Shown here: piece after piece, positions 1 through 21,000 of the stretch
Layout of the letters: each line of letters opens with the position of its first letter
How positions within the stretch are numbered: position 1 is the first letter of the stretch
DNA from: Hypanus sabinus
Taxonomy: Eukaryota
DNA: 64,000 nucleotides
Assembly: GCF_030144855.1 (NCBI RefSeq)
Contig: NW_026781003.1
Location: 496,001 to 560,000, forward strand
Direction: 5' to 3'
The notes under the pieces: generated by a model
The model's input: only the letters and a program-made list of their open reading frames with translations
Databases searched by the model: none
What the model was told of the DNA's origin: nothing
Made by a program: the position numbers and the translations under genes

Positions 1-150
1 AGAAAAGAGGGAGGTGAATCTGTGGAATTCTCTGCCACGGACACCAGGGAGTCCATTCAGGAGAGAGCTTGGAATGTTCTTGTTTTGCTGGGGTTCAAAG
101 GTAACCAGGAGTGGTCAGGAAGACGGGATTCATTGGGACAACACATCAGC
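1..150 (+). mobile_element. Degraded CR1-type LINE 3' fragment
   Basis: gaggtgaatctgtggaattctctgcca (NLWNSLP) resembles the conserved V-x-x-W-N-x-L-P terminus of CR1 ORF2. Recognised by eye only. Confidence 0.5.
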
Positions 151-151
151 C

Positions 152-240
152 AAAGCTCAAAGTAAATTTATTATCAAACGACATACATGTCACCAGGTAG
201 AACCCAGCGATTCAATTCCTCAAGGGTAATCACACTGAAC
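152..240 (-). mobile_element. Possible LINE 3' tail remnant (Rex/Babar-like)
   Basis: tcaaagtaaatttattatcaa reads as an AATAAA-containing tail on the minus strand and resembles a common elasmobranch interspersed repeat. Recognised from memory, not searched. Confidence 0.3.
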
Positions 241-287
241 ACATGAAAGAACAGTGTCTTTGAAGGATGAGTCGGACCACAGAGAGG

Positions 288-356
288 GGATACGACCCAG
301 TACCATGATCACTGAGCACATCTGCCATCGCATCATCGGGGACGCAGGACATGCTG
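288..356 (+). mobile_element. Degraded Rex/Babar-like LINE ORF2 segment directly upstream of the 70-bp array
   Basis: gatacgacccagt...actgagcacatctg...gcatcatcggggac...caggacatgc resembles the region preceding PSGRRYRSL in Rex1/Babar ORF2. Confidence 0.4.
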
Positions 357-2840
357 AAAGTACAGGAGCCTCAGGACCAACACCACCAGGTTCAGTGACA
401 GTTATCACCCCTCAACCATCAGGAAGGAGGTACAGGAGCCTCAGGACCCACACCACCAGGTTCAGGGACAGTTATCACCCCTCAACCATCAGGAAGGAGG
501 TACAGGAGCCTCAGGACCGACACCACCAGGTTCAGGGACAGTTATTACCCCTCAACCATCAGGAAGGAGGTACAGGAGCCTCAGGACCCACACCACCAGG
601 TTCAGGGACAGTTATCACCCCTCAACCATCAGGAAGGAGGTACAGGAGCCTCAGGACCCACACCACCAGGTTCAGGGACAGTTATTACCCCTCAACCATC
701 AGGAAGGAGGTACAGGAGCCTCAGGACCCACACCACCAGGTTCAGGGACAGTGAGCACCCCTCAACCATCAGGAAGGAGGTACAGGAGCCTCAGGACCCA
801 CACCACCAGGTTCAGGGACAGTTATCACCCCTCAACCATCTGGAAGGAGGTACAGGAGCCTCAGAACCCACACCACCAGGTTCAGGGACAGTTACCACCC
901 CTCAACCATCAGGAAGGAGGTACAGGAGCCGCAGGACCCACACCACCAAGTTCAGGGACAGTTATTACCCCTCAACCATCTGGAAGGAGGTACAGGAGCC
1001 TCAGCACCAGGTTCAGGGACAGTTATCACCCCTCAACCATCAGGAAGGAGGTACAGGAGCCTCAGGACCCACACCACCAGGTTCAGGGACAGTTATCACC
1101 CCTCAACCATCAGGAAGGAGGTACAGGAGCCTCAGGACCCACACCACCAGGTTCAGGGACAGTTATCACCCCTCAACCATCAGGAAGGAGGTACAGGAGC
1201 CTCAGGACCCACACCACCAGGTTCAGGGACAGTGATCACCCCTCAACCATCAGGAAGGAGGTACAGGAGCCTCAGGACCCACACCACCAGGTTCAGGGAC
1301 AGTTATTACCCCTCAACCATCAGGAAGGAGGTACAGGAGCCTCAGGACCCACACCATCAGGTTCAGGGACAGTTATCACCCCTCAACCATCAGGAAGGAG
1401 GTACAGGAGCCTCAGGACCCACACCACCAGGTTCAGGGACAGTTATTACCCCTCAACCATCAGGAAGGAGGTACAGGAGCCTCAGCACCCACACCACCAG
1501 GTTCAGGGACAGTGATCACCCCTCAACCATCAGGAAGGAGGTACAGGAGCCTCAGGACCCACACCACCAGGTTCAGGGACAGTTATTACCCCTCAACCAT
1601 CTGGAAGGAGGTACAGGAGCCTCAGGACCCACCCCACCAGGTTCAGGGACAGTTATCACCCCTCAACCATCAGGAAGGAGGTACAGGAGCCTCAGGACCC
1701 ACACCACCAGGTTCAGGGACAGTTATCACCCCTCAACCATCTGGAAGGAGGTACAGGAGCCTCAGGACCAGGTTCAGGGACAGTTATCACCCCTCAACCA
1801 TCAGGAAGGAGGTACAGGAGCCTCAGGACCCACACCACCAGGTTCAGGGACAGTTATCACCCCTCAACCATCAGGAAGGAGGTACAGGAGCCTCAGGACC
1901 CACACCACCAGGTTCAGGGACAGTTATCACCCCTCAACCATCAGGAAGGAGGTACAGGAGCCTCAGGACACACACCACCAGATTCAGGGACAGTTATCAC
2001 CCCTCAACCATCAGGAAGGAGGTACAGGAGCCTCAGGACCCACACCACCAGGTTCAGGGACAGTTATCACCCCTTAACCATCAGGAAGGAGGTAGAGGAG
2101 CCTCAGGACCCACACCACCAGGTTCAGGGACAGTTATCACCCCTCAACCATCAGGAAGGAGGTACAGGAGCCTCAGGACCCACACCACCAGGTTCAGGGA
2201 CAGTTATTACCCCTCAACCATCTGGAAGGAGGTACAGGAGCCTCAGCACCAGGTTCAGGGACAGGTATTACCCCTCAATCATCAGGAAGGAGGTACAGGA
2301 GCCTCAGGACCCACACCACCAGCTTCAGGGACAGTTATCACCCCTCAACCATCAGGAAGGATGTACAGGAGCCTCAGGACACACACCACCAGCTTCAGGG
2401 ACAGTTATTACCCCTCAACCATCAGGAAGGAGGTACAGGAGCCTCAGGACCCACACCACCAGCTTCAGGGACAGTTATCACCCCTCAACCATCAGGAAGG
2501 ATGTACAGGAGCCTCAGGACACACACCACCAGCTTCAGGGACAGTTATTACCCCTCAACCATCAGGAAAGAGGTACAGGAGCAACAGGACCCGCACCACC
2601 AGTTTCAGGGACAGTTATTACTCCTCAAACCATCAGAAAGGAGGTACAAGAGCCTCAGGACCCACACCACCAGCTTCAGGGACAGTTATTACCCCTCAAC
2701 CATCAGGAAAGAGGTACAGGAGCCTCAGGACCCACACCACCAGGTTCAGGGAGAGTTATTACCCCTCAACCATCAGGATGGAGGTACAAGAGCCTCAGGA
2801 CCAACACCACCAGGTTCAGGAACAGTTATTACCTATCAAC
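357..2840 (+). repeat. 70-bp tandem array, about 35 copies, derived from a Rex1/Babar-type LINE ORF2 C-terminus
   Basis: Unit cctcaaccatcaggaaggaggtacaggagcctcaggacccacaccaccaggttcagggacagttatcacc; aggaaggagg recurs at 421 and 491. One frame reads PSGRRYRSLRTHTTRFRDSYYPSTIR. Confidence 0.9.
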
Positions 2841-3774
2841 CTGGTGGTGTAGGTCCTGAGGCTCCTGTACCTCCTTCCCCATGGCTGAGGGGCGATAACT
2901 GTCCCAGAAAATAGTGGTGTGGTTTCTGAGGCTCCTGTACCTCCTTCCTGATGGTTGAGGGCTGATAACTGTCCCTGAACCTGGTGGTGTGTGTCCTTAG
3001 GCTCCTGTATCTCCTTCCTGATGATTGAGCGGTGATAACTGTCCCTGATCCTGTAGGTGTGGGTCCTGAGGCTCCTGCACCTCCTTCCTGATTATTAAGG
3101 GGTGTTAACTGTCCCTGGACCTAGTTGTTTTGGTCCTGAGGCTCCTGCACCACCTTCCTGATGGTTGAGGGGTGATAACTGTCCCTGAACCTGGTGGTGT
3201 GGGTCCTGAGGCTCCTGTACCTCCTTCCTGATGGTTGAGGGGTGATAACTGTCCCTGAACCTGGTGGTGTGGGTCCTGAGGCTCCTGTACCTCCTTCCTG
3301 ATGGTTGAGGGTGATAACTGTTCCTGAACCTGGTGGTGTGGGTCCTGAGGCTCCTGTACCTCCTTCCTGATGGTTGAGGGGTGATAACTGTCCCTGAACC
3401 TGGTGGTGTGGGTCCTGAGGCTCCTGTACCTCCTTCCTGATGGTTGAGGGGTGATAACTGTCCCTGCACCTGGTGGTGTGGGTCCTGAGGCTCCTGTACC
3501 TCCTTCCTGATGGTTGAGGGGTGGTAACTGTTCCTGAACCTGGTGGTGTGGCTCCTGGGGCTCCTGTACCTCCTTCCTGATGGGTGAGGGGTGGTAACTG
3601 TTCCTGAACCTGGTGGTGTGGCTCCTGGGGCTCCTGTACCTCCTTCCTGATGGTTGAGGGGTAATAACTGTCCCTGAACCTGGTGGTGTGGCTCCTGGGG
3701 CTCCTGTACCTCCTTCCTGATGGTTGAGGGGAGAACTGTCCCTGAATCTGGTGGTGTGGGTCCTGAGGCTCCTG
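2839..3774 (-). repeat. Inverted arm of the same 70-bp array, about 13 copies
   Basis: From acctggtggtgt at about 2839 the unit reads as the reverse complement (ctggtggtgtgggtcctgaggctcctgtacctccttcctgatggttgagggg). It ends about 70 bp before the AICDA acceptor. Confidence 0.92.
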
Positions 3775-3817
3775 CAGGGGGTCCACGGTGGGGAGGGTCT
3801 GGGCCGGGAATGCCAGG

Positions 3818-9479
<5,662 letters not shown>

Positions 9480-11518
9480 TGAATCTCCTCTGCACCCTCT
9501 CTAATCCAGACAGCGTCCCAGTGAATCTCCTCTGCACGCTCTCTAATCCAGACAGCGTCCCGGTGAATCTCCTCTGCACGCTCTCTAATCCAGACAGCAT
9601 CCTGGTGAATCTCCTCTGCACCCTCTCTAATCCAGGCAGCGTCCCGGTGAATCTCCTCTGTACCCTCTCTAATCCAGGCAGCGTCCCGGTGAATCTCCTC
9701 TGCACGCTCTCTAATCCAGGCAGCGTCCGGGTGAATCTCCTCTGCACCCTCTCTAATCCAGACAGCGTCCCGGTGAATCTCCTCTGCACCCTCTCTAATC
9801 CAGACAGCGTCCCGGTGAATCTCCTCTGCATGCTCTCTAATCCAGGCAGCGTCTGGGTGAATCTCCTCTGCACCCTCTCTAATCCAGACAGCGTCCCGGT
9901 GAATCTCCTCTCCACCCTCTCTAATCCAGGCAGCGTCCCGGTAAATCTCCTCTGCACGCTCTCTAATCCAGGCAGCGTCCGGGTGAATCTCCTCTGCACC
10001 CTCTCTAATCCAGACAGCGTCCCGGTGAATCTCCTCTGCACCCTCTCTAATCCAGACAGCGTCCCGGTGAATCTCCTCTGCACGCTCTCTAATCCAGGCA
10101 GCGTCTGGGTGAATCTCCTCTGCACCCTCTCTAATCCAGACAGCGTCCCGGTGAATCTCCTCTCCACCCTCTCTAATCCAGGCAGCATCCCGGTGAATCT
10201 CCTCCGCACCCTCTCTAATCCAGGCAGCATCCTGGTGAACCTCCTCTGCACCCTCTAATCCAGGCTGCGTCCCGCTGAATCTCCTCCGCACCCTCTCTAA
10301 TCCAGGCAGCGTCCAAGTGAATCTCCTCAGCACCCTCTCTAATCCAGGCAGCGTCCCGGTGAATCTCCTCTGCATCCTCTCTAATCCAGACAGCATCCTG
10401 GTGAATCTCCTCTGCACACTCTCTAATCCAGGCAGCGTCCCGGTGAATCTCCTCTGCACCCTCTCTAATCCAGGCAGCGTCTGGGTGAATCTCCTCCGCA
10501 CCCTCTCTAGTCCAGGCAGCGTCCGGGTGAATCTCCTCTGCACCCTCTCTAATCCAGGCAGCGTCCCGGTGAATCTCATCTGCACCCTCTCTAATCCAGG
10601 CAGCGTCCCGGTGAATCTCCTCTGCACCCTCTCTAATCCAGGCAGCGTCCCGGTGAATCTCCTCTGCACCCACTCTAATCCAGACAGCGTCCCGGTGAAT
10701 CTCCTCTGCACCCTCTCTAATCCAGGCAGCGTCCCGGTGAATCTCCTCTGCACCCTCTCTAATCCAGGCAGCGTCCCGGTGAATCTCCTCTGCACCCTCT
10801 CTAATCCAGACGGCGTCCCGGTGAATCTCCTCTGCACCCTCTCTAATCCAGACGGCGTCCCGGTGAATCTCTTCTGCACCCTCTGTAATCCAGGCAGTGT
10901 CCCGGTGAATCTCCTCTGCACCCTCTCTAATCCAGACAGCGTCCCGGTGAATCTCCTCCGCACCCTCTCTAATCCAGGCAGCGTTCCGGTGAATCTCCTC
11001 CGCACCCACTCTAATCCAGGCAGCGTCCCGGTGAATCTCCTCTGCACCCTCTCTAATCCAGGCAGCGTCCCAGTGAATCTCCTCTGCACCCTCTCTAATC
11101 CAGGCAGCGTCCCGGTGAATCTGCTCTGCACCCTCTCTAATCCAGGCAGCGTCCCGGTGAATCTCCTCTGCACCCTCTCTAATCCAGGCAGCGTCCTGGT
11201 GAATCTTCTCTGCACTCTCTCTAATCCAGACAGCGTCCCGGTGAATCTCCTCTTCACCCTCTCTGATCCAGGGAGCGTCCCGGTGAATCTCCTCTGCACC
11301 CTCTCTAATCCAGGCAACATCCCGGTGAATCTCCTCTGCACCCTCTTTAATCCAGACAGCGTCCTGGTGAATCTTCTCTGTACCCTCTCTAATCCAGGCG
11401 GGGTCCTGGTGAATTTCCTCTGCACCCTCGCTAATCCAGGCAGCGTCCCGGTGAATCTCCTCTCCACCCTCTCTAATCCAGGCGGCGTCCCGGTGAATCT
11501 CCTCTGCACCCTCTCTAA
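9480..11518 (-). repeat. 42-bp tandem array, about 48 copies, derived from CR1 ORF2 ([14 protein letters not shown])
   Basis: Plus-strand unit gtgaatctcctctgcaccctctctaatccaggcagcgtcccg. The minus strand translates as 14-aa repeats of the CR1 motif [15 protein letters not shown] short deletion near 10255 shifts the frame. Confidence 0.95.
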
Positions 11519-11585
11519 AGCTCCCATACCCTTCCTATAATGGGTCGACTAGAACTGATCACAATACCCCAAGCATGGTTCAGAC
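11519..11585 (-). mobile_element. CR1 ORF2 fragment contiguous with the 42-bp array (parent sequence)
   Basis: The minus strand reads QLYTPLSEPCLGYCDQF*STHYRKGMGA and runs straight into LERVQRRFT. This matches QLYRTLVRPHLEYCAQFWSPHYRKDVETIERV seen at 12967-13251. Confidence 0.8.
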
Positions 11586-11739
11586 AGGGGTGTATAGAGC
11601 TGACACATTCCCTTGTGGCTCATGACCTTAATCCCCTGACTAATGGAGACCAACACGCCTCGGGCCCCCCTTCACCACAGTTTGTCCCCTCGCCCAGCGT
11701 CTTGGCGTGTCTCCGAGACCCCCCCCCCCCCCGCACACC

Positions 11740-12610
11740 GAGTCCCTTTCCACACCGGTAAGAATCCCGCCACTCACTCTCTGAGTGCGACCTTCTGCAT
11801 CGAACTGCATCTGCCACTTCTCAGCCCAGCTCCGCTGCCTTGTCGGCGTCCCGTCCCATCTTCTGCTCCCCCTCCCCCCACCGCAGCCCCGCGTCCTCTG
11901 CCACCCGCTGCGATGGATGTTATCGACGCGGACGTTCCTGTTACGAGGCCCCTCCGGGGGCCCCATGGGCGTTGGCTCGCCTCCAGGGGGCAGGACGGGG
12001 GTCAGTGGGACCTGAGGGCCGTGACTCGTGGTGGCCGGCAGGGAGCTGGACTGCGACCGCAGCCGTTTGGAGCAGGGCCCACCACCACAGGCCCTTCGGC
12101 CCGCAATTCTGTGCCGACCACGTCGCCTACTCTGGAGACGGCGTCGAATTCCCCGCGCGCATTGCCCCCTACCTTTCTGAACCCCGTGTACCGTGTACCA
12201 AATGCTCCTCATTTGTTAACTCCCTCGTTCCCGGGAATCAATCCCCACGAACCCCCTCGCCAACGGCAACACAACCTCTCTGAGCCGCGGAGCCCCAGGA
12301 CTGCCGACAGGACTCCCAGTGCGGCCTGACCGGTTGTCTCACAAAGGCTCCCGCATTACCTCCCTGCTTTTATTTTCTGTCCCCCTTGAAATAAATGCCG
12401 ACAGCATGTGTGCCTTCTTCACCACAGACTCGACCTGCAAATTAACCTCCGGGGAGTCTCGCACGAGAGACCACACCCCCCCCCCCCCCAAGTCACTCTG
12501 AAGCCTGAACCCTCTCCCCATTTCCATAGCACTATTGTTATTGCACCATTGTTCCTCTTGCCGAGACGCATCGTCACGGCGTTTCCCAACTCTGCATCCC
12601 ATCTGGCAAG
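11740..12610 (-). mobile_element. Mosaic of short, GC-rich degraded CR1 fragments
   Basis: Minus-strand CR1-like pieces: WAEKWQMQFDAE (about 11790-11830); a 3' UTR-like ggtcggcacagaattgcgggccgaagggcctg (about 12085-12120); MIPG-like sequence (about 12200-12242); NLQVESVVKKAHMLSAFISRGTENKSREVM (about 12355-12445). Unassigned sequence lies between them. Confidence 0.65.
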
Positions 12611-12674
12611 TCAGGGTAAGGGAGGTGGGGGAGGGCAGGGGTTAGGCGAAACTGCGAGAGGAGGGAGGAAGCAT

Positions 12675-13425
12675 TGAAACACAGAGGACCTGCAGCAGAA
12701 TACAGGCCCTGCGGCCCACAAGGTCGTGCTGACAAGGTAACCTACCTTAGAAATGACCAGGCTTACCCACAGCCCTCTATTTTTCTCAGCTCCACGTACC
12801 TATCCAAAAGTCTCTTAAAAGACCCTATCGTATCCCCCCAAACCCACCGTCGCCGGCAGCCCATTCCACACACTCGCCACTCTCTGAGTGAAAAACTTAC
12901 CCCCTGACATCCCCTCTGTACCTGCTCCCCAGCACCTTAAACCTGTGTCCTCTTGTGGCAACCATTTCAGCCCTGGGGAAAAAGCCTCTGACTATCCACA
13001 CCATCAATGCCTCTCGTCATCTTGTACCCCTCTATCGGGTCACCTCTCACCTTCCGTCGCTCCGAGGAGAAAAGGCCGAGTTCACTCAACCTATTCTCAC
13101 AGGGCACGCTCCCCAATCCAGGCAACATCCTTGTAAATCTCCTCCGCACCCTTTCTATGGTTTCCACGTCCTTCCTGTAGTGAGGCGACCAGAACTGAGC
13201 ACAGTACTCCAAGTGGGGTCTGACCAGGGTCCTATAGAGCTGTAACATCACCTCTCGGCTCCTAAACTCAATCCAGGCAACATCCTTGTAAATCTCCTCC
13301 GCACCCTTTCTATGGTTTCCACGTCCTTCCTGTAGTGAGGCGACCAGAACTGAGCACAGTACTCCAAGTGGGGTCTGACCAGGGTCCTATATAGCTGTAA
13401 CATTACCTCTCGGCTCCTAAACTCC
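12675..13425 (-). mobile_element. 5'-truncated CR1 LINE (ORF2 C-terminus plus 3' UTR) with an internal 155-bp direct duplication
   Basis: ORF 12967-13251 reads MLQLYRTLVRPHLEYCAQFWSPHYRKDVETIERVRRRFTRMLPGL...LGLFS...RGDPIEGYK. The segment starting aatccaggcaacatcc occurs at both 13115 and 13270. Confidence 0.9.
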
Positions 13426-13732
13426 CTACCTTAGAAATTACTGTGATTACCCATACCCCTCTATTTTACTAAGCTCCATGTACCTGCCCAGGAGTCTCTT
13501 AAAAGACCCTCTCGTATCCCCCCAAACCCACCGTCGCCGGCAGCCCATTCCACACACTCACCACTCTCTGAGTGAAAAACTCACCCCTGACATCTCCTCT
13601 GTACCTGCTCCCCAGCACCTTAAACCTGTGTCCTCTTGTGGCAACCATTTCAGCCCCGGGGAAAAAGCCTCTGACTATCCACACCATCAATGCCTCTCGT
13701 CATCTTGTACCCCTCTATCGGGTCACCTCTCA
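13426..13732 (-). mobile_element. Second copy of the CR1 3' segment
   Basis: Near-identical to about 12744-13050 (cctaccttagaa...gtcacctctca). Encodes RGHRFKVLGSRYRGDVRGEFFTQRVVSVWNGLP. Confidence 0.88.
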
Positions 13733-13734
13733 TC

Positions 13735-14370
13735 CATGTTGGGATAGAGATGATGAGAGGCATTGATCATGTGGACAGTCAGAGGCTTTTTCCCCAGGGT
13801 GAAATGGTTAGTTAACATGAGGGAACATGTCTTTTGAAAACAGATTGAGGGATGATGTATAAGATGATGAGAGACATTTAAGAACCCATAGAAAGATTGC
13901 AGAGGAGATTTACAAGGATGTTGCCTGCACCGGGGAGCGTCCCCTGTGAGAATAGGTTGAGTGAACTCGGCCTTTTCTCCTTGGTGCGACGGAGGGTGAG
14001 AGGTGACCCGATAGAGGGGTACGAGATGATGAGAGGCATTGATGGTGTGGATAGTCAGAGGCTTTTTCCCCAGGGCTGAAATGGTTGCCACAAGAGGACA
14101 CAGGTTTAAGGTGCTGGGGAGTGTGTACGGAGGAGAAGTTTTTCACTCAGAGAGTGGTGAGTGTGTGGAATGGGCTGCCGGCGACGGTGGTTTTGGGGGG
14201 GATACCATAGGGTCTTCGAAGAGACTCCTGGACAGGTACATGGAGCTGTGAAAAAATAGAGGGCAGTGCGGTAGGGAAATACTGGCCAGTTTCTGGAGTA
14301 GGTAACAGGGTCAGCACCACATTACGGGCCGAAGGGCCTGCGGCGTGCCGTAGATTTCTACGCTCCTCCG
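13735..14370 (+). mobile_element. CR1 3' fragments in the opposite orientation (13735-13805 and about 13880-14370)
   Basis: ORF 13897-14079 reads QRRFTRMLPAPGSVPCENRLSELGLFSLVRRRVRGDPIEGYEMMRGIDGVDSQRLFP. It is followed by FHSESGECVEW-frame sequence and a 3' UTR ending gggccgaagggcctg...gtagatttcta. Confidence 0.88.
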
Positions 14371-14534
14371 GAGAGCCCGCACGATGTCCGGAACATCCCA
14401 CACAGCGCACAAGCCAAACCCTCGGCCACAGGGAGCACGTCAGAAAACGTAGGCCGTCAAGGGCAGCGGAGGTGAAGGGCGGACGGTTTCCCGGTGACGA
14501 GACCTCGGCGTCCGTCCACCTCACGGCCCGAGGG

Positions 14535-14632
14535 AAGGAGCCGTTACCCAGCCTGGCAGTCGCAGTTCCTGCACCTCCCTCCTGACGGCAGGGGAACAAA
14601 GAGATGGTGGGGTGGGCGGATCCGGGGATCCA
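14535..14632 (-). mobile_element. Degraded Rex/Babar-like LINE fragment
   Basis: The minus strand reads DPRIRPPHHLFVPLPSGGRCR, resembling the DPxHPxHxLFxLLPSGRRYR motif. It covers the same region as the 70-bp unit. Confidence 0.5.
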
Positions 14633-14639
14633 CGTCCCC

Positions 14640-15290
14640 CTCTTCACGTCCCGTTCTCCCACGTGCTGCTCTCAACATCCCATTCTGAATGTTCCCTCTC
14701 TCCACGTCCTGTTCTCCACGTCCCATTCTGAATGTCCCACTCTCCACGTCCTGTTCTCCATGTCCCACTCTTAACATCCCATTCTGAATGTTCCACTCTC
14801 AACTTCCCCCTCTCCACGTCCCATTCTGAATGTCTCACTCTCCACGTCCTGTTCTCCACATCCCCCTCTCCACGGCCTGTTCTCAATGTCCCCCTCTCCA
14901 CGTCCTGTTCTCCATGTCCCACTCTCAACATCCCATTCTGAATGTTCCCTCTCTCCACGTCCTGTTCTCAACATCCCCCTCTCCACGTCCCATTCTGAAT
15001 GTCCCACTCTCCACGTCCTGTTCTCAACATCCCCCTCTCCACGTCCCATTCTGAATGTCTCACTCTCCACGTCCTGTTCTCCATGTCCCACTCTTAACAT
15101 CCCATTCTGAATGTTCCCCTCTCAACTTCCCTCTCCCCATGTCCCGTTCTCCACGTCCCATTCTGAATGTCCCCCTCTCCACATCCTGTTCTCAATGTCC
15201 CCCTCTCCACATCCTGTTATCAAATTCCCACACCCCATATCCCCCTCTTCACGTCTTGTTCTCGCACATCCCATTCTGACTGTCCCCCTC
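14640..15290. repeat. Irregular pyrimidine-rich tandem repeat
   Basis: Shuffled modules ctctccacgtcc, tgttctc, catcccattctgaatgt and cccact. Confidence 0.85.
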
Positions 15291-17390
15291 TCCACGTGTC
15301 TCTCTCCACGTCCCCCTCTCCACGTCCCATTCTCCACGCCCCCCTCTCCACGTGTCTCTCTCTACATCCTCCTCTACACGTGTCTCTCTCCACATCCCCC
15401 TCTACACGCCCCCCTCTACACGTGTCTCTCTCCACATGTCTCTCTCCACGTGTCTCTCTCCACGTCACCCTCTCTACGTCCCCTCTCCACGTCCCCCTCT
15501 TCATGTGTCTCTCTCCACGTCCCCCTCTCCACGTGTCTCTCTCTATATCCCCCTCTCGTCTCTCTCTACATCCCCCTCTCCACGTCCCCCTCTCCACATC
15601 CCCCTCTCCACGTGTCTCTCTCTACATCCCCCTCTCCACATGTCAGTCTCTACATCCCCCTCTCCACGTGTCTCTCTCTACATCCCCCTCTCCACGTGTC
15701 TCTCTCTACATCCCCCTCTCCACGTGTCTCTCTCTACATCCCCCTCTCCACGTGTCTCTCTACATCCCCCTCTCCACGTCTCTCTCTACATCCCCCTCTC
15801 CACGTGTCTCTCTACATCCCCCTCTCCACGTCTCTCTCTACATCCCCCTCTCCACGTGTCTCTCTCTACATCCCCCTCTCCACGTGTCTCTCTCCACGTG
15901 TCTCTCTCTACATCCCCCTCTCCACATCTCTCTCTACATCCTCCTCTCCACGTGTCTCTCTCTACATCCCCCTCTCCACGTGTCTCTCTCCACGTGTCTC
16001 TCTCTACATCCCCCTCTCCACGTGTCTCTCTCTACATCCCCCTCTCCGTGTCTCTCCACGTGTCTCTCTCTACATCCCCCTCTCCACATGTCTCTCTCTA
16101 CATCCTCCTCTCCACATGTCTCTCTCTACATCCCCCTCTCCACGTGTCTCTCTCCACGTCCCCCTCTCCACGTCTCTCTCTACATCCCCTCTCCACGTGT
16201 CTCTCTCTACATCCCCCTCTCCACGTGTCTCTCTCTACGTCCCCCTCTCCACATCTCTCTCTACATCCCCCTCTCTACGTCTCTCTCTACATCCCCCTCT
16301 CCATGTGTCTCTCTCCACGTGTCTCTCTCTACATCCCCCTCTCCACGTGTCTCTCTCTACATCCCCCTCTCCACATGTCTTTCTCTACATCCCCCTCTCC
16401 ATGTGTCTCTCTCCACGTGTCTCTCTCTACATCCCCCTCTCCACGTGTCTCTCTCTACATCCCCCTCTCCATGTGTCTCTCTCCACGTGTCTCTCTACAT
16501 CCCCCTCTCCACGTGTCTCTCTCTACATCCCCCTCTCCATGTGTCTCTCTCCACGTGTCTCTCTCTACATCCCCCTCTCCACGTGTCTCTCTACATCCCC
16601 CTCTCCACATGTCTCTCTCTGCATCCCCCTCTCCACGTGTCTCTCTACATCCCCCTCTCCACGTGTCTCTCTCTACATCCCCCTCTCCACGTGTCTCTCT
16701 ACATCCCCCTCTCCACGTCTCTCTACATCCCCCTCTCCACGTGTCTCTCTCTACATCCCCCTCTCCACGTCTCTCTCTCTACATCCCCCTCTCCACGTGT
16801 CTCTCTCTACCCCTCTCCACGTGTCTCTCTCTACATCCTCCTCCCCACGTGTCTCTCTCTACATCCCCCTCTCCACGTGTCTCTCTCTACATCCCCCTCT
16901 CCACGTGTCTCTCTCCACGTGTCTCTCTCTACATCCCCCTCTCCATGTGTCTCTCTCCACGTGTCTCTCTCCACGTGTCTCTCTCCACGTGTCTCTCTCT
17001 ACATCCCCCTCTCCAAGTGTCTCTCTCTACATCCCCCTCTCCACATCTCTCTCTACATCCCCCTCTCCGTGTCTCTCTCCACGTGTCTCTCTCCACATGT
17101 CTCTCTCTACATCACCCTCTCCACTTGTCTCTCTCTACATCCCCCTCTCCACGTGTCTCTCTCCACGTGTCTCTCTCTACATCACCCTCTCCACTTGTCT
17201 CTCTACATCCCCCTCTCCACGTGTCTCTCTCTACATCCCCCTCTCCACGTGTCTCTCTCTACATCCCCCTCTCCACGTGTCTCTCTCCACGTGTCTCTCT
17301 CTACATCCCCCTCTCCACGTCTCTCTCTACATCCCCCTCTCCACGTGTCTCTCTCCACGTCTCCCTCTCCACGTCCCATTCTCCACGTCC
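15291..17390. repeat. Low-complexity C/T-rich minisatellite (about 26-28 bp, with 14-bp subunits) containing CACGTG
   Basis: Modules catccccctctccacgtgtctctctcta and ctctccacgtgt. About 50 CACGTG by hand count. G is almost absent on the + strand outside that motif. Confidence 0.92.
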
Positions 17391-17479
17391 GACGTCCCAC
17401 GCGTTAACGTCCCACCATCTTCAGCCTCCCCTTCTCCGCTCGCTGACGTGAAACTCTTTGCTGTGCTTTCCCCCGACAG

Positions 17480-17533
17480 CCGCTGGACGAGATCGATGAT
17501 TTCACCGAGGTCTTCCAGCTCCTGGGCCTGTGA
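17480..17533 (+). CDS. AICDA: AICDA terminal coding exon (PLDEIDDFTEVFQLLGL*), carrying the nuclear export signal
   Basis: Acceptor gctttcccccgacag ends at 17479, phase 0. It has 17 codons plus TGA (17531-17533). It aligns with human PLYEVDDLRDAFRTLGL*, keeping D187, D188, F193, L196, G197 and L198. It is too short to appear in the ORF track. Confidence 0.93.
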   Translation, partial: PLDEIDDFTEVFQLLGL

Positions 17534-17968
17534 GGATCCGCGGGTGCTCCGGGATGTCCCCCACCCCCCCACCACCCCTCCCCGGGACTGCTCAGGGCAC
17601 ACCAGAGACACGGAAACAACCGAGAAGGCCTCAGGCTTCAGTTTGGCCGTCACGATCAGGGATCGGAAGCGGGAAGCTGCAGCTGTTTCAAACCCCCCCC
17701 CACCTCTCCCCATCCCAGGGGTCGGCGGGACGGAGGTGGGGAGGGGGGAACGCTGGGACGATTCACCCCCTCCCTGCATCCCTCACCCAGGGGTCGGTGG
17801 GACAGGGACCCGGGGCTGATTCAACCCCCTCCTTCCAACACCACCACAACCACCCCCCTGTCTGTGGCATGGGAAGACAGGAAACCTCTGTATGTCAAAT
17901 AAAGCATTAACAAAGTTCTCATCGATCTCAAATCAAAGTATAATCAAAATAAATATGTTTAAAGCCCA
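17534..17968 (+). other. AICDA: AICDA 3' UTR (end approximate)
   Basis: Non-repetitive sequence from the stop codon to a candidate CA cleavage site (17967-17968). That site is about 14 nt after the second AATAAA and just before a GT-rich tract. Confidence 0.65.
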
Positions 17969-17990
17969 CGTTTTGCGTTGCTTGTGTCCC
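17898..17990 (+). terminator. Polyadenylation region: AATAAA at 17898-17903 and 17948-17953, with a GT-rich downstream element
   Basis: Two canonical hexamers. gttttgcgttgcttgtgt (about 17970-17987) lies where a downstream element for the second hexamer is expected. Confidence 0.7.
17903..17910 (+). promoter_or_regulatory. miR-155 8-mer target site AGCATTAA
   Basis: Exact complement of miR-155 nt 2-8 (UAAUGCU) plus the 3' A. miR-155 repression through the Aicda 3' UTR is established in mouse. Confidence 0.75.
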
Positions 17991-18040
17991 TAGGCTGCAA
18001 TCTAAATCAAGGCTTAAGAGAGGGAGGGGGAGGGTGGCAT

Positions 18041-21000
18041 CGAGGGGTTTATATATAGAATAACAGATCCCCGGGAGTGGGTTACAGACTATGATCTGAT
18101 CCAGGGGTTCGGGGGTATATATACAGAATAACAGATCCCCGGGAGTGGGTTATAGACTGGGATCTAATCCAGGGGTTCGGGGGGTTTATATATAGAAAAA
18201 CAGATCCCCGGGAGTGGGTTACAGACTGGGATCTAATCCAGGGGTTCAGTGTGTTTATATATAGAATAACAGATCCCCGGGAGTGGGTACAGACTGGGAT
18301 CTAATCCAGGGGTTCGGGGGGGGGGGGGGTTTATATATAGAATAACAGATCTCCGGGAGTGGGTTACAGACTGGGATCCAATCCAGGGTTTCGGGGGTTT
18401 ACATATAGAATAACAGATCCCCGGGAGTGGGTTACAGACTGGGATCTAATCGAGGGGTTCGGTGGGTGGGGGGGGGGTTATATATAGAATAACAGATCCC
18501 CGGGAATGGGTACAGACTGGGATCCAATCCAGGGGTTCGGGGGTTTATATATAGAATAACAGATCCCCGGGAGCAGGTTACAGACTGGGATCTAATCCAG
18601 GGGTTCGGGGGGGGTTTATATATAGAATAACAGATCCCCGGGAGTGGTTTACAGACTGAGATCTAATCCAGGGTTTCGGGGGGTTTATATATAGAATAAC
18701 AGATTCCCGGGAGTGGGTTACAGACTGAGATCTAATCCAGGCGTTCGTGGGGTTTATATATAGAATAACAGATCCCCAGGAGAGGGTTACAGACTGAGAT
18801 CTAATCCAGGGGTTCGGAGGATTTAGATATAGAATAACAGATCCCCGGGAGTGGGTTACAGACTGGGATCGAATCCAGGGGTTCAGTGTGTTTATATATA
18901 GAATAACAGATCCCCGGGAGTGGGTACAGACTGGGATCTAATCCAGGGGTTCGGGGGGTTTATATATAGAATAACAGATCCCCGGGAGTGGGTTACAGAC
19001 TGGGATCTAATCCAGGGTTTCGGAGGGTTTATATATAGAATAACAGATCCCCGGGAGTGGGTTACAGACTGAGATCTAATCCAGGCATTCGTGGGGTTTA
19101 TATATAGAATAACAGATCCCCGGGAGAGGGTTACAGACTGAGATCTAATCCAGGGGTTCGGGGGAGGGTGATATATAGAATAACAGATCCCCGGGAGTGG
19201 GTTACAGACTGGGATCGAATCCAGGGGTTCAGTCTGTTTATATATAGAATAACAGATCCCCGGGAGTGGGTACAGACTGGGATCTAATCCAGGGGTTCGG
19301 GGGGTTTATATATAGAATAACAGATCCCTGGGAGTGGGTTACAGACTGGGATCTAATCCAGGGTTTCGGAGGGTTTATATATAGAATAACAGATCCCCGG
19401 GAGTGGGTTACAGACTGGGATCTAATCCAGGGGTTTGGTGGGTTTATATATAGAACACCAGATCCCCGGGAGTGGGTTACAGACTGGGATCTAATCCAGG
19501 GGTTCGAAGGGTTTATATATAGAATAACAGATCCCCGGGACTGGGTTACAGACCGGTATCTAATCCAGGGGTTCAGGGGGTTTATATATAGAATACCAGA
19601 TCCCCGGGAGTGGGTTACAGACTGGGATCTAATCCAGGGGTTCGGGGGGTTTATATATAGAATAACAGATCCCCGGGAGTGGGTTACAGACTGGGATCAA
19701 ATCCAGGGGTTTGGGGGGTTTATATATAGAATAACAGATCCCCGGGAGTGGGTTACAGACTGGGATCTAATCCAGGGGTTCGGGGGGGGGGTTTATATAT
19801 AGAATAACAGATCCCCGGGAGTGGGTTACAGACTGGGATCTAATCCAGGTTTTCAGAGGGTTTATATATAGAATAACAGATCCCCGGGAGTGGGTTACAG
19901 ACTGGGATCTAATCCAGGGGTTTGGTGGGTTTATATATAGAACACCAGATCCCCGGGAGTGGGTTACAGACTGGGATCTAATCCGGGGGTTCGGAGGGTT
20001 TATATATAGAATAACAGATCCCCGGGACTGGGTTACAGACCGGTATCTAATCCAGGGGTTCGGGGGGTTTATATATAGAATAACAGATCCCCGGGAGTGG
20101 GTTACAGACTGGGATCTAATCCAGGGGTTCGCAGGGTTTATATATAGAATAACAGATCCCCGGGAGTGGGTTACAGACTGGGATCTAATCCAGGGGTTCG
20201 GAGGGTTTATATATAGAATAACAGATCCCCGGGAGTGGGTTACAGACTGGGATCGAATCCAGGGGTTCAGTGTGTTTATATATAGAATAACAGATCCCCG
20301 GGAGTGGGTTACAGACTGGGATCTAATCCAGGGGTTCGGGGGTTTATATACAGAATACCAGATCCCCGGGAGTTGGTTACAGACTGGGATCTAATCCAGG
20401 GGTTTGGTGGGTTTATATATAGAACACCAGATCCCCGGGAGTGGGTTACAGACTGGGATCTAATCCAGGGGTTCGGAGGGTTTATATATAGAATAACAGA
20501 TCCCCGGGACTGGGTTACAGACTGGGATCTAATCCAGGGGTTCGGGGGGTTTATATATAGAATAACAGATCCCCGGGAGTGGGTTACAGACTGGGATCTA
20601 ATCCAGGGGTTTGGTGGGTTTATATATAGAACACCAGATCCCCGGGAGTGGGTTACAGACTGGGATCTAATCCAGGGGTTCGGAGGGTTTATATATAGAA
20701 TAACAGATCCCTGGGAGTGGGTTACAGACTGGGATTTAATCCAGGGGTTAAGGGGGTTTATATATAGAATAACAGATCCCCGGGTGTGGGTTACAGACTG
20801 GGATCTAATCCAGGGGTTCGGGTAGTTTATATATAGAATACCAGATCCCCGGGAGTGGGTTACAGACTGGGATCTAATCCAGGGGTTCAGGGGGTTTATA
20901 TACAGAATAACAGATCCCCGGGAGTGGGTTTCAGACTGGGATCTAATCCAGGGGTTCGGAGGGTTTATATATAGAATAACAGATCCCCGGGAGTGGGTTA

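Follow-up and report, generated by a model that had tools for sequence, protein, structure and literature searches.

The DNA analyzed here (hereafter the window) is a 64-kb stretch of the genome of Hypanus sabinus (Atlantic stingray), a cartilaginous fish, and the gene it contains is AICDA, which encodes AID. Three coding exons with canonical splice sites were identified on the + strand. The first (3845–4263) corresponds to mammalian exons 2 and 3 fused into one, lies between an AG acceptor at 3843–3844 and a GTGAGT donor at 4264, and encodes the deaminase core (HAE...SWSPC); in its tblastn block it is 99% identical to the canonical isoform X3 (P0131). Exon 4 (9220–9335, 116 nt), with the acceptor ...cacag/AT and the donor CAG/GTGAGT, is translated as DYFYCWNTF...LLRRILQ. 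The last coding exon segment (17480–17533) comprises PLDEIDDFTEVFQLLGL and the TGA stop at 17531–17533, and is 100% identical to residues 181–198 of P0131. The MDS-encoding exon 1 was not located.

Over 90% of the query, the translation of the three exons showed 100% identity with the "single-stranded DNA cytosine deaminase" that NCBI lists for Hypanus sabinus; its identity with P0131 was 93–100% across the three tblastn blocks. The first-pass annotation, made from the letters of the window, had called this gene AICDA and had made its evolutionary argument conditional on a cartilaginous fish; the protein match bears out the gene, and the species is indeed a cartilaginous fish. Stingray AID is 75–76% identical to shark AID, and the last exon is missing from the Chiloscyllium and Carcharodon AID proteins.

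The exon corresponding to mammalian exons 2 and 3 is single and uninterrupted not only in the stingray (3845–4263) but also in the skates Leucoraja (L001, 10001–10411) and Amblyraja (L002, 10001–10411) and in the coqui frog (L007, 23266–23688), while the parrot retains an intron between the mammalian-type exons 2 and 3. In two of the stingray isoform models, X1 and X2, read-through beyond exon 4 (9336–9482) replaces the export-signal tail of exon 5 with 48 unrelated residues; such transcripts would be without exon 5 and the 3′UTR that holds the miRNA sites described below. These read-through models may be gene-modelling artefacts in a repeat-filled locus.

The gene sits amid tandem arrays at 360–3774, 4286–9201, 9478–11518, 14629–17390 and 18040–63997, with periods of 70, 52, 42, 28/42 and 69 bp, and its introns are almost pure tandem repeats. 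Intron 3 (4264–9219) is nearly all 52-bp array, at ~94 copies, and the translation of the 42-bp array gives a repeated motif resembling the C-terminal part of the LINE ORF2 fragments at 12967–13403. The 69-bp satellite array (18040–63997, ~664 copies) abuts the 3′ end of the gene, outside the miRNA site, and these 46 kb of satellite are all that the window contains downstream of AICDA. In gar (L003, 17067–22392) and stickleback (L006, 12328–15938), AICDA is followed by a DUF1681-family gene on the same strand and then by a MAGP-family gene.

The inferred 3′UTR, its poly(A) signals and its seed matches

The inferred 3′UTR (17534–17970, + strand) extends from the stop codon to two AATAAA hexamers spaced 50 nt apart, giving a length of ~390 nt with the proximal signal or ~435 nt with the distal one. 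The proximal AATAAA (17898–17903) is a perfect hexamer with CA at +17 and +26, and its downstream GU fraction is only 0.43, a weak downstream element. The distal AATAAA (17948–17953) has a CA 14 nt downstream (17967–17968), a GU-rich stretch at 17970–17988 and a GU fraction of 0.62 at +10 to +30. Since both the CA and the GU-rich element accompany the distal hexamer and the element at the proximal one is weak, the distal AATAAA at 17948 is probably the main, dominant poly(A) signal.

The string AATAAAGCATTAA at 17898–17910 consists of the proximal AATAAA (17898–17903) and AGCATTAA (17903–17910, on the AICDA strand), with the A at 17903 common to both. AGCATTAA is the reverse complement of miR-155 nt 2–8 plus an A opposite nt 1, which makes it a canonical 8mer; the 5p arm of a stingray miR-155 with this seed would start UUAAUGCU. 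The first-pass annotation had described a perfect miR-155 8mer overlapping the proximal AATAAA, and its letters and coordinates are exact. The site lies 370 nt 3′ of the stop codon. If the distal signal is used, the UTR would be ~435 nt long and cleavage would occur ~58 nt beyond the site.

The chance expectation of the 8mer was evaluated on two scales. Over the 64-kb window and both strands, AGCATTAA occurs once, and dinucleotide shuffles of the whole window yielded a mean of 0.22 copies, with at least one copy in 21 of 100 shuffles. In the 437-nt stretch that follows the stop codon, the count expected from its own base composition is 0.0035. The earlier chance estimate of 0.7% had assumed uniform composition and is about twice this value. 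The AU content around the site is 63–67%, compared with 41% for the whole UTR, and the last ~100 nt are AU-rich; the local chance of the 8mer is therefore somewhat above 0.0035 but still below 1%.

An 8mer match, a short UTR, a position near the UTR end, AU-rich flanks and accessibility make up the context that favours efficacy in mammals. All 8 nt of the stingray site are predicted to be unpaired with a probability of 0.34; the median over exon 5 and the UTR is ~0.03. As modelled, the context of the site is favourable, with a short UTR, a location near its end, AU-rich flanks and accessibility. Pairing of the miR-155 3′ supplementary region at the stingray site did not significantly exceed what shuffled flanks gave (p=0.07).

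A second perfect 8mer, AGTTCTCA at 17914–17921 (+ strand), matches the miR-146 seed 3 nt downstream of the miR-155 site. When the UTR was searched with 78 broadly conserved vertebrate miRNA seeds, miR-155 and miR-146 provided its only two 8mers. The miR-146 seed is also present behind AICDA as a 7mer-A1 in parrot (+373) and frog (+435), so that three of six lineages carry it within 500 nt, a level reached by ~0.6% of 7-mers. Because miR-146 was picked out post hoc, among about ten seeds and then among 78, we treat this match only as a lead. Use of the proximal signal with cleavage near 17920 would remove the miR-146 site from the transcript and keep the miR-155 site.

Seed matches behind AICDA in other jawed vertebrates

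The stingray was compared with the AICDA loci of Leucoraja erinacea (L001), Amblyraja radiata (L002), spotted gar (L003), a parrot (Amazona, L005), stickleback (L006) and coqui frog (L007). These species, all with smaller assemblies, were picked by availability before any site had been seen. For Mobula birostris, Scyliorhinus torazame, Heterodontus francisci, Mustelus asterias and Cetorhinus maximus, gene positions only were obtained, and these species stand outside the comparison set. The two skates were merged into one lineage, giving n=6, and the UTR ends of the species other than the stingray are guesses. A Logan transcript with an amniote-like AID (L004) has 614 nt of UTR with no miR-155 site; it was excluded from the lineage test because its species is unidentified and its UTR incomplete.

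Matches of at least 7 nt to the miR-155 seed were found within 2 kb after the AID stop in five of the six jawed-vertebrate lineages. In the stingray, the 8mer at +370 overlaps one AATAAA and has another 38 nt downstream. Leucoraja has an 8mer at +420 and Amblyraja a 7mer-A1 at +428, and in both skates the site itself makes an ATTAAA. The gar has a 7mer-A1 at +436 with an ATTAAA 43 nt downstream. The stickleback match is a 7mer-m8 at +28 in a UTR of ~220 nt with an AATAAA at +202, and the parrot match is an 8mer at +1879, counted from the called gene end, with an AATAAA 54 nt downstream. The coqui frog has none within 2.7 kb and a 7mer-A1 at +2779.

The skate sites are located inside a shared, decayed, sense-oriented, reverse-transcriptase-like insertion (L001, 13840–15100; L002, 13829–15090) that scores against Pfam RVT_1 with E=5.6e-4, below Pfam's cutoff. 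The insertion starts ~190 nt after the AID stop and supplies both the seed match and the overlapping ATTAAA. The first 1.46 kb after the stop are 95.7% identical between Leucoraja and Amblyraja, and the two species differ exactly at the position-8 base of the miR-155 match. A transposon origin together with a position-8 difference between such close species indicates that the skate site is not tightly constrained.

Alignment of the stingray UTR with the skate downstream DNA gave low-complexity matches only, so positional conservation of the miR-155 site cannot be claimed. Alignment of the site flanks between lineages gave only one AT-rich block resembling a poly(A) signal, between stingray and gar (z=3.1 against mononucleotide shuffles), which is unconvincing.

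The recurrence of the seed was measured by a rank test over all 16,384 7-mer seeds, in which each seed was scored by the number of lineages (out of six) with a 7mer-m8, 7mer-A1 or 8mer within a set distance of the stop. The miR-155 seed was present in four of six lineages within 500 nt, a count reached by 7 seeds, and in four within 1 kb, where 27 seeds were as good. It reached five lineages within 2 kb (38 seeds as good) and all six within 3 kb (6 seeds as good). The recurrence thus places miR-155 in the top 0.04–0.23% of all 7-mers over the four window sizes; these sizes were fixed after the first offsets had been seen, and the result holds at all four. One tying seed, TGCATTA, ties because it has the same 7mer-A1 string as miR-155 and is the same signal.

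The result was similar against narrower sets of seeds. Among 420 composition-matched permutations, the miR-155 seed stood alone at the top at 500 and 3000 nt and came within the top three at 2 kb, and it ranked first among the 78 miRNA seeds at every window size. The background density elsewhere in the same loci, taken on both strands, corresponds to a chance of 0.03–0.11 that a given lineage has a site within 500 nt. The miR-155 seed matches behind AICDA recur without conservation of position. The first-pass annotation had suggested that a cartilaginous-fish site would date the circuit to the jawed-vertebrate ancestor; the seed matches do recur in five of six lineages, but positional conservation was not seen. 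The recurrence supports an ancient miR-155/AID interaction that would have been maintained by site turnover, and it fits a link that is either ancestral or under lasting selection.

Interpretation of the stingray site

AID mutates DNA deliberately, and its dose divides useful antibody diversification from genome damage. In the mouse, B-cell activation raises miR-155, which binds a single site in the Aicda 3′UTR that sets the AID dose, lowers AID protein and limits off-target damage. Two papers of 2008 in Immunity 28, by Teng et al. and by Dorsett et al., both among the references of PMC10810276, reportedly found this repression through one 3′UTR site. In sharks and rays, immunoglobulin genes and T-cell receptor genes undergo somatic hypermutation. 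MirGeneDB reportedly dates the Mir-155 family to the jawed vertebrates and has chondrichthyan entries for it. On the invertebrate side, miR-155 is absent from amphioxus (PMC2728532). An Rfam search of positions 1–20000 of the window gave no match. Our literature search found nothing direct on mir-155 in cartilaginous fishes or on whether the AID site is conserved beyond mammals and, within limited literature access, no published report of a miR-155/AICDA site in a cartilaginous fish. The interaction itself is well known in mammals; what is new here is the predicted stingray site and the recurrence statistics across jawed vertebrates.

We lean toward the explanation that the 8mer at 17903–17910 is a genuine miR-155 target in stingray AICDA mRNA and that the interaction, a long-standing and selected feature of jawed vertebrates, has been kept by turnover of sites; this is also the most economical account. 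If so, the mammalian miR-155 brake on AID is probably very old. We infer that the mRNA ends at ~17920–17970, that a stingray miR-155 with the same seed is present and expressed, and that repression occurs. By analogy with the mouse, B-cell activation would induce miR-155, which would be loaded into Argonaute, and its seed would pair with the site, which is predicted to be accessible and has AU-rich flanks close to the end of the short UTR. Deadenylation, decay and translational repression would then lower the output of AID protein, and the reduced AID would limit off-target mutation and translocation. The stingray site would be one lineage's version of an interaction that jawed vertebrates have kept by turnover rather than by position.

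The most substantial competing explanation, to which we give clearly less credence, is that the match arose by chance and regulates nothing: next to a poly(A) hexamer, the AU-rich end of the UTR came to read AGCATTAA, and the sites of the other species are coincidental. Such coincidence would account for flanks and UTRs that cannot be aligned, for skate sites that are transposon-borne and vary between two close species, for the presence of only 7mers in Amblyraja, gar and stickleback, and for a frog locus without a site in the first 2.7 kb. Near poly(A) signals, A-rich 7-mers are frequent, the supplementary pairing is not significant, and mir-155 in the stingray lineage is an assumption. It is harder to reconcile with an expected count of 0.0035 for the 8mer in this UTR, with a five-in-six recurrence reached by so small a fraction of 7-mers, with the first place that the seed takes among the 78 miRNA seeds and, at two window sizes, among permutations of equal composition, and with a background of 0.03–0.11 sites per 500 nt in the same loci. 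In addition, mouse genetics made miR-155 the single a priori candidate, which also counts against chance.

Two further explanations accept the sequence features and give them a different weight, and both seem unlikely to us. According to one, the base shared by the 8mer and the AATAAA couples the two elements, so that poly(A) choice or the proximity of poly(A)-binding protein tunes repression, or Argonaute competes with the cleavage machinery. The one-base overlap is real, as are the two hexamers 50 nt apart; use of the proximal signal would put the site ~3–23 nt from the poly(A) tail and could cut off the miR-146 8mer (17914–17921), and the skate seed match itself forms an ATTAAA hexamer. That skate overlap, however, is built into the motif, since a miR-155 8mer followed by A always spells ATTAAA. 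Cleavage normally occurs 10–30 nt after a poly(A) hexamer, and the miR-155 8mer ends 7 nt after the proximal one; the isoforms predicted from either hexamer both retain the 8mer, and poly(A) choice therefore cannot switch miR-155 control off. With the distal signal (CA at +14, GU 0.62) probably dominant over the proximal one (GU 0.43), the suggestion in the first-pass annotation that poly(A) choice tunes repression is not supported for these two signals; an effect of closeness to the tail may exist but finds no support here. The other explanation, which we rate a shade lower still, is that AID output is regulated mainly outside this UTR and that read-through of the exon 4 donor makes the site marginal. 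Isoforms X2 (P0001) and X1 (P0130) continue past ...RRILQ and terminate within intron 4 at the stop codon 9480–9482, and the intron 4 end is found in five NCBI accessions, compared with one that has the canonical end. These are, however, automatic gene models in a repeat-filled locus, where the 8.1-kb intron 4 is difficult to bridge with spliced reads, and the canonical exon 5 is intact, conserved and provided with good splice sites.

The preferred explanation, a genuine target kept by turnover, can be set beside known systems. The mouse and human sites are in the orthologous gene and offer the same seed match, as a single site in the 3′UTR (inferred in the stingray, where the match is of the strongest class, an 8mer). 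Against these, the stingray lineage is ~450 million years removed; its UTR is short (~0.4 kb), GC-rich and unalignable to those of other lineages, and its predicted site overlaps a poly(A) hexamer. In target-site turnover, the link between regulator and gene persists while individual sites are gained and lost, with no aligned site. The AICDA sites resemble this pattern in that their offsets differ, one set came with a transposon and none can be aligned. Dense sampling inside a clade is the usual way to show turnover, whereas the present comparison covers six deep lineages with inferred UTR boundaries.

If the stingray site works, miR-155 control of AID would date back as far as the AID-based adaptive immunity of jawed vertebrates itself, and the case would be a clear example of a miRNA-target link surviving site turnover in unalignable UTRs. 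The antiquity of AID dose control would thereby become directly testable by simple experiments. A more far-reaching version, which we offer tentatively and would not expect to hold in full, is that the brake was already present, together with AID-driven antibody diversification, in the last common jawed-vertebrate ancestor and has since passed through ~450 million years of site loss and regain near the 3′UTR end, with the skate site supplied by a transposon and the stingray miR-155 site forming, with that for miR-146, the other classical immune miRNA, a compact, undescribed two-miRNA module.

The putative stingray site also resembles other known miRNA control in which the dosage of a mutagenic enzyme is set through 3′UTR seed sites; unlike that control, the stingray UTR has no 7mer for miR-181, miR-15/16 or miR-17/93. 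The miR-15/16 seed, with the stingray not among its carriers, is present behind AICDA within 2 kb in four of the six lineages.
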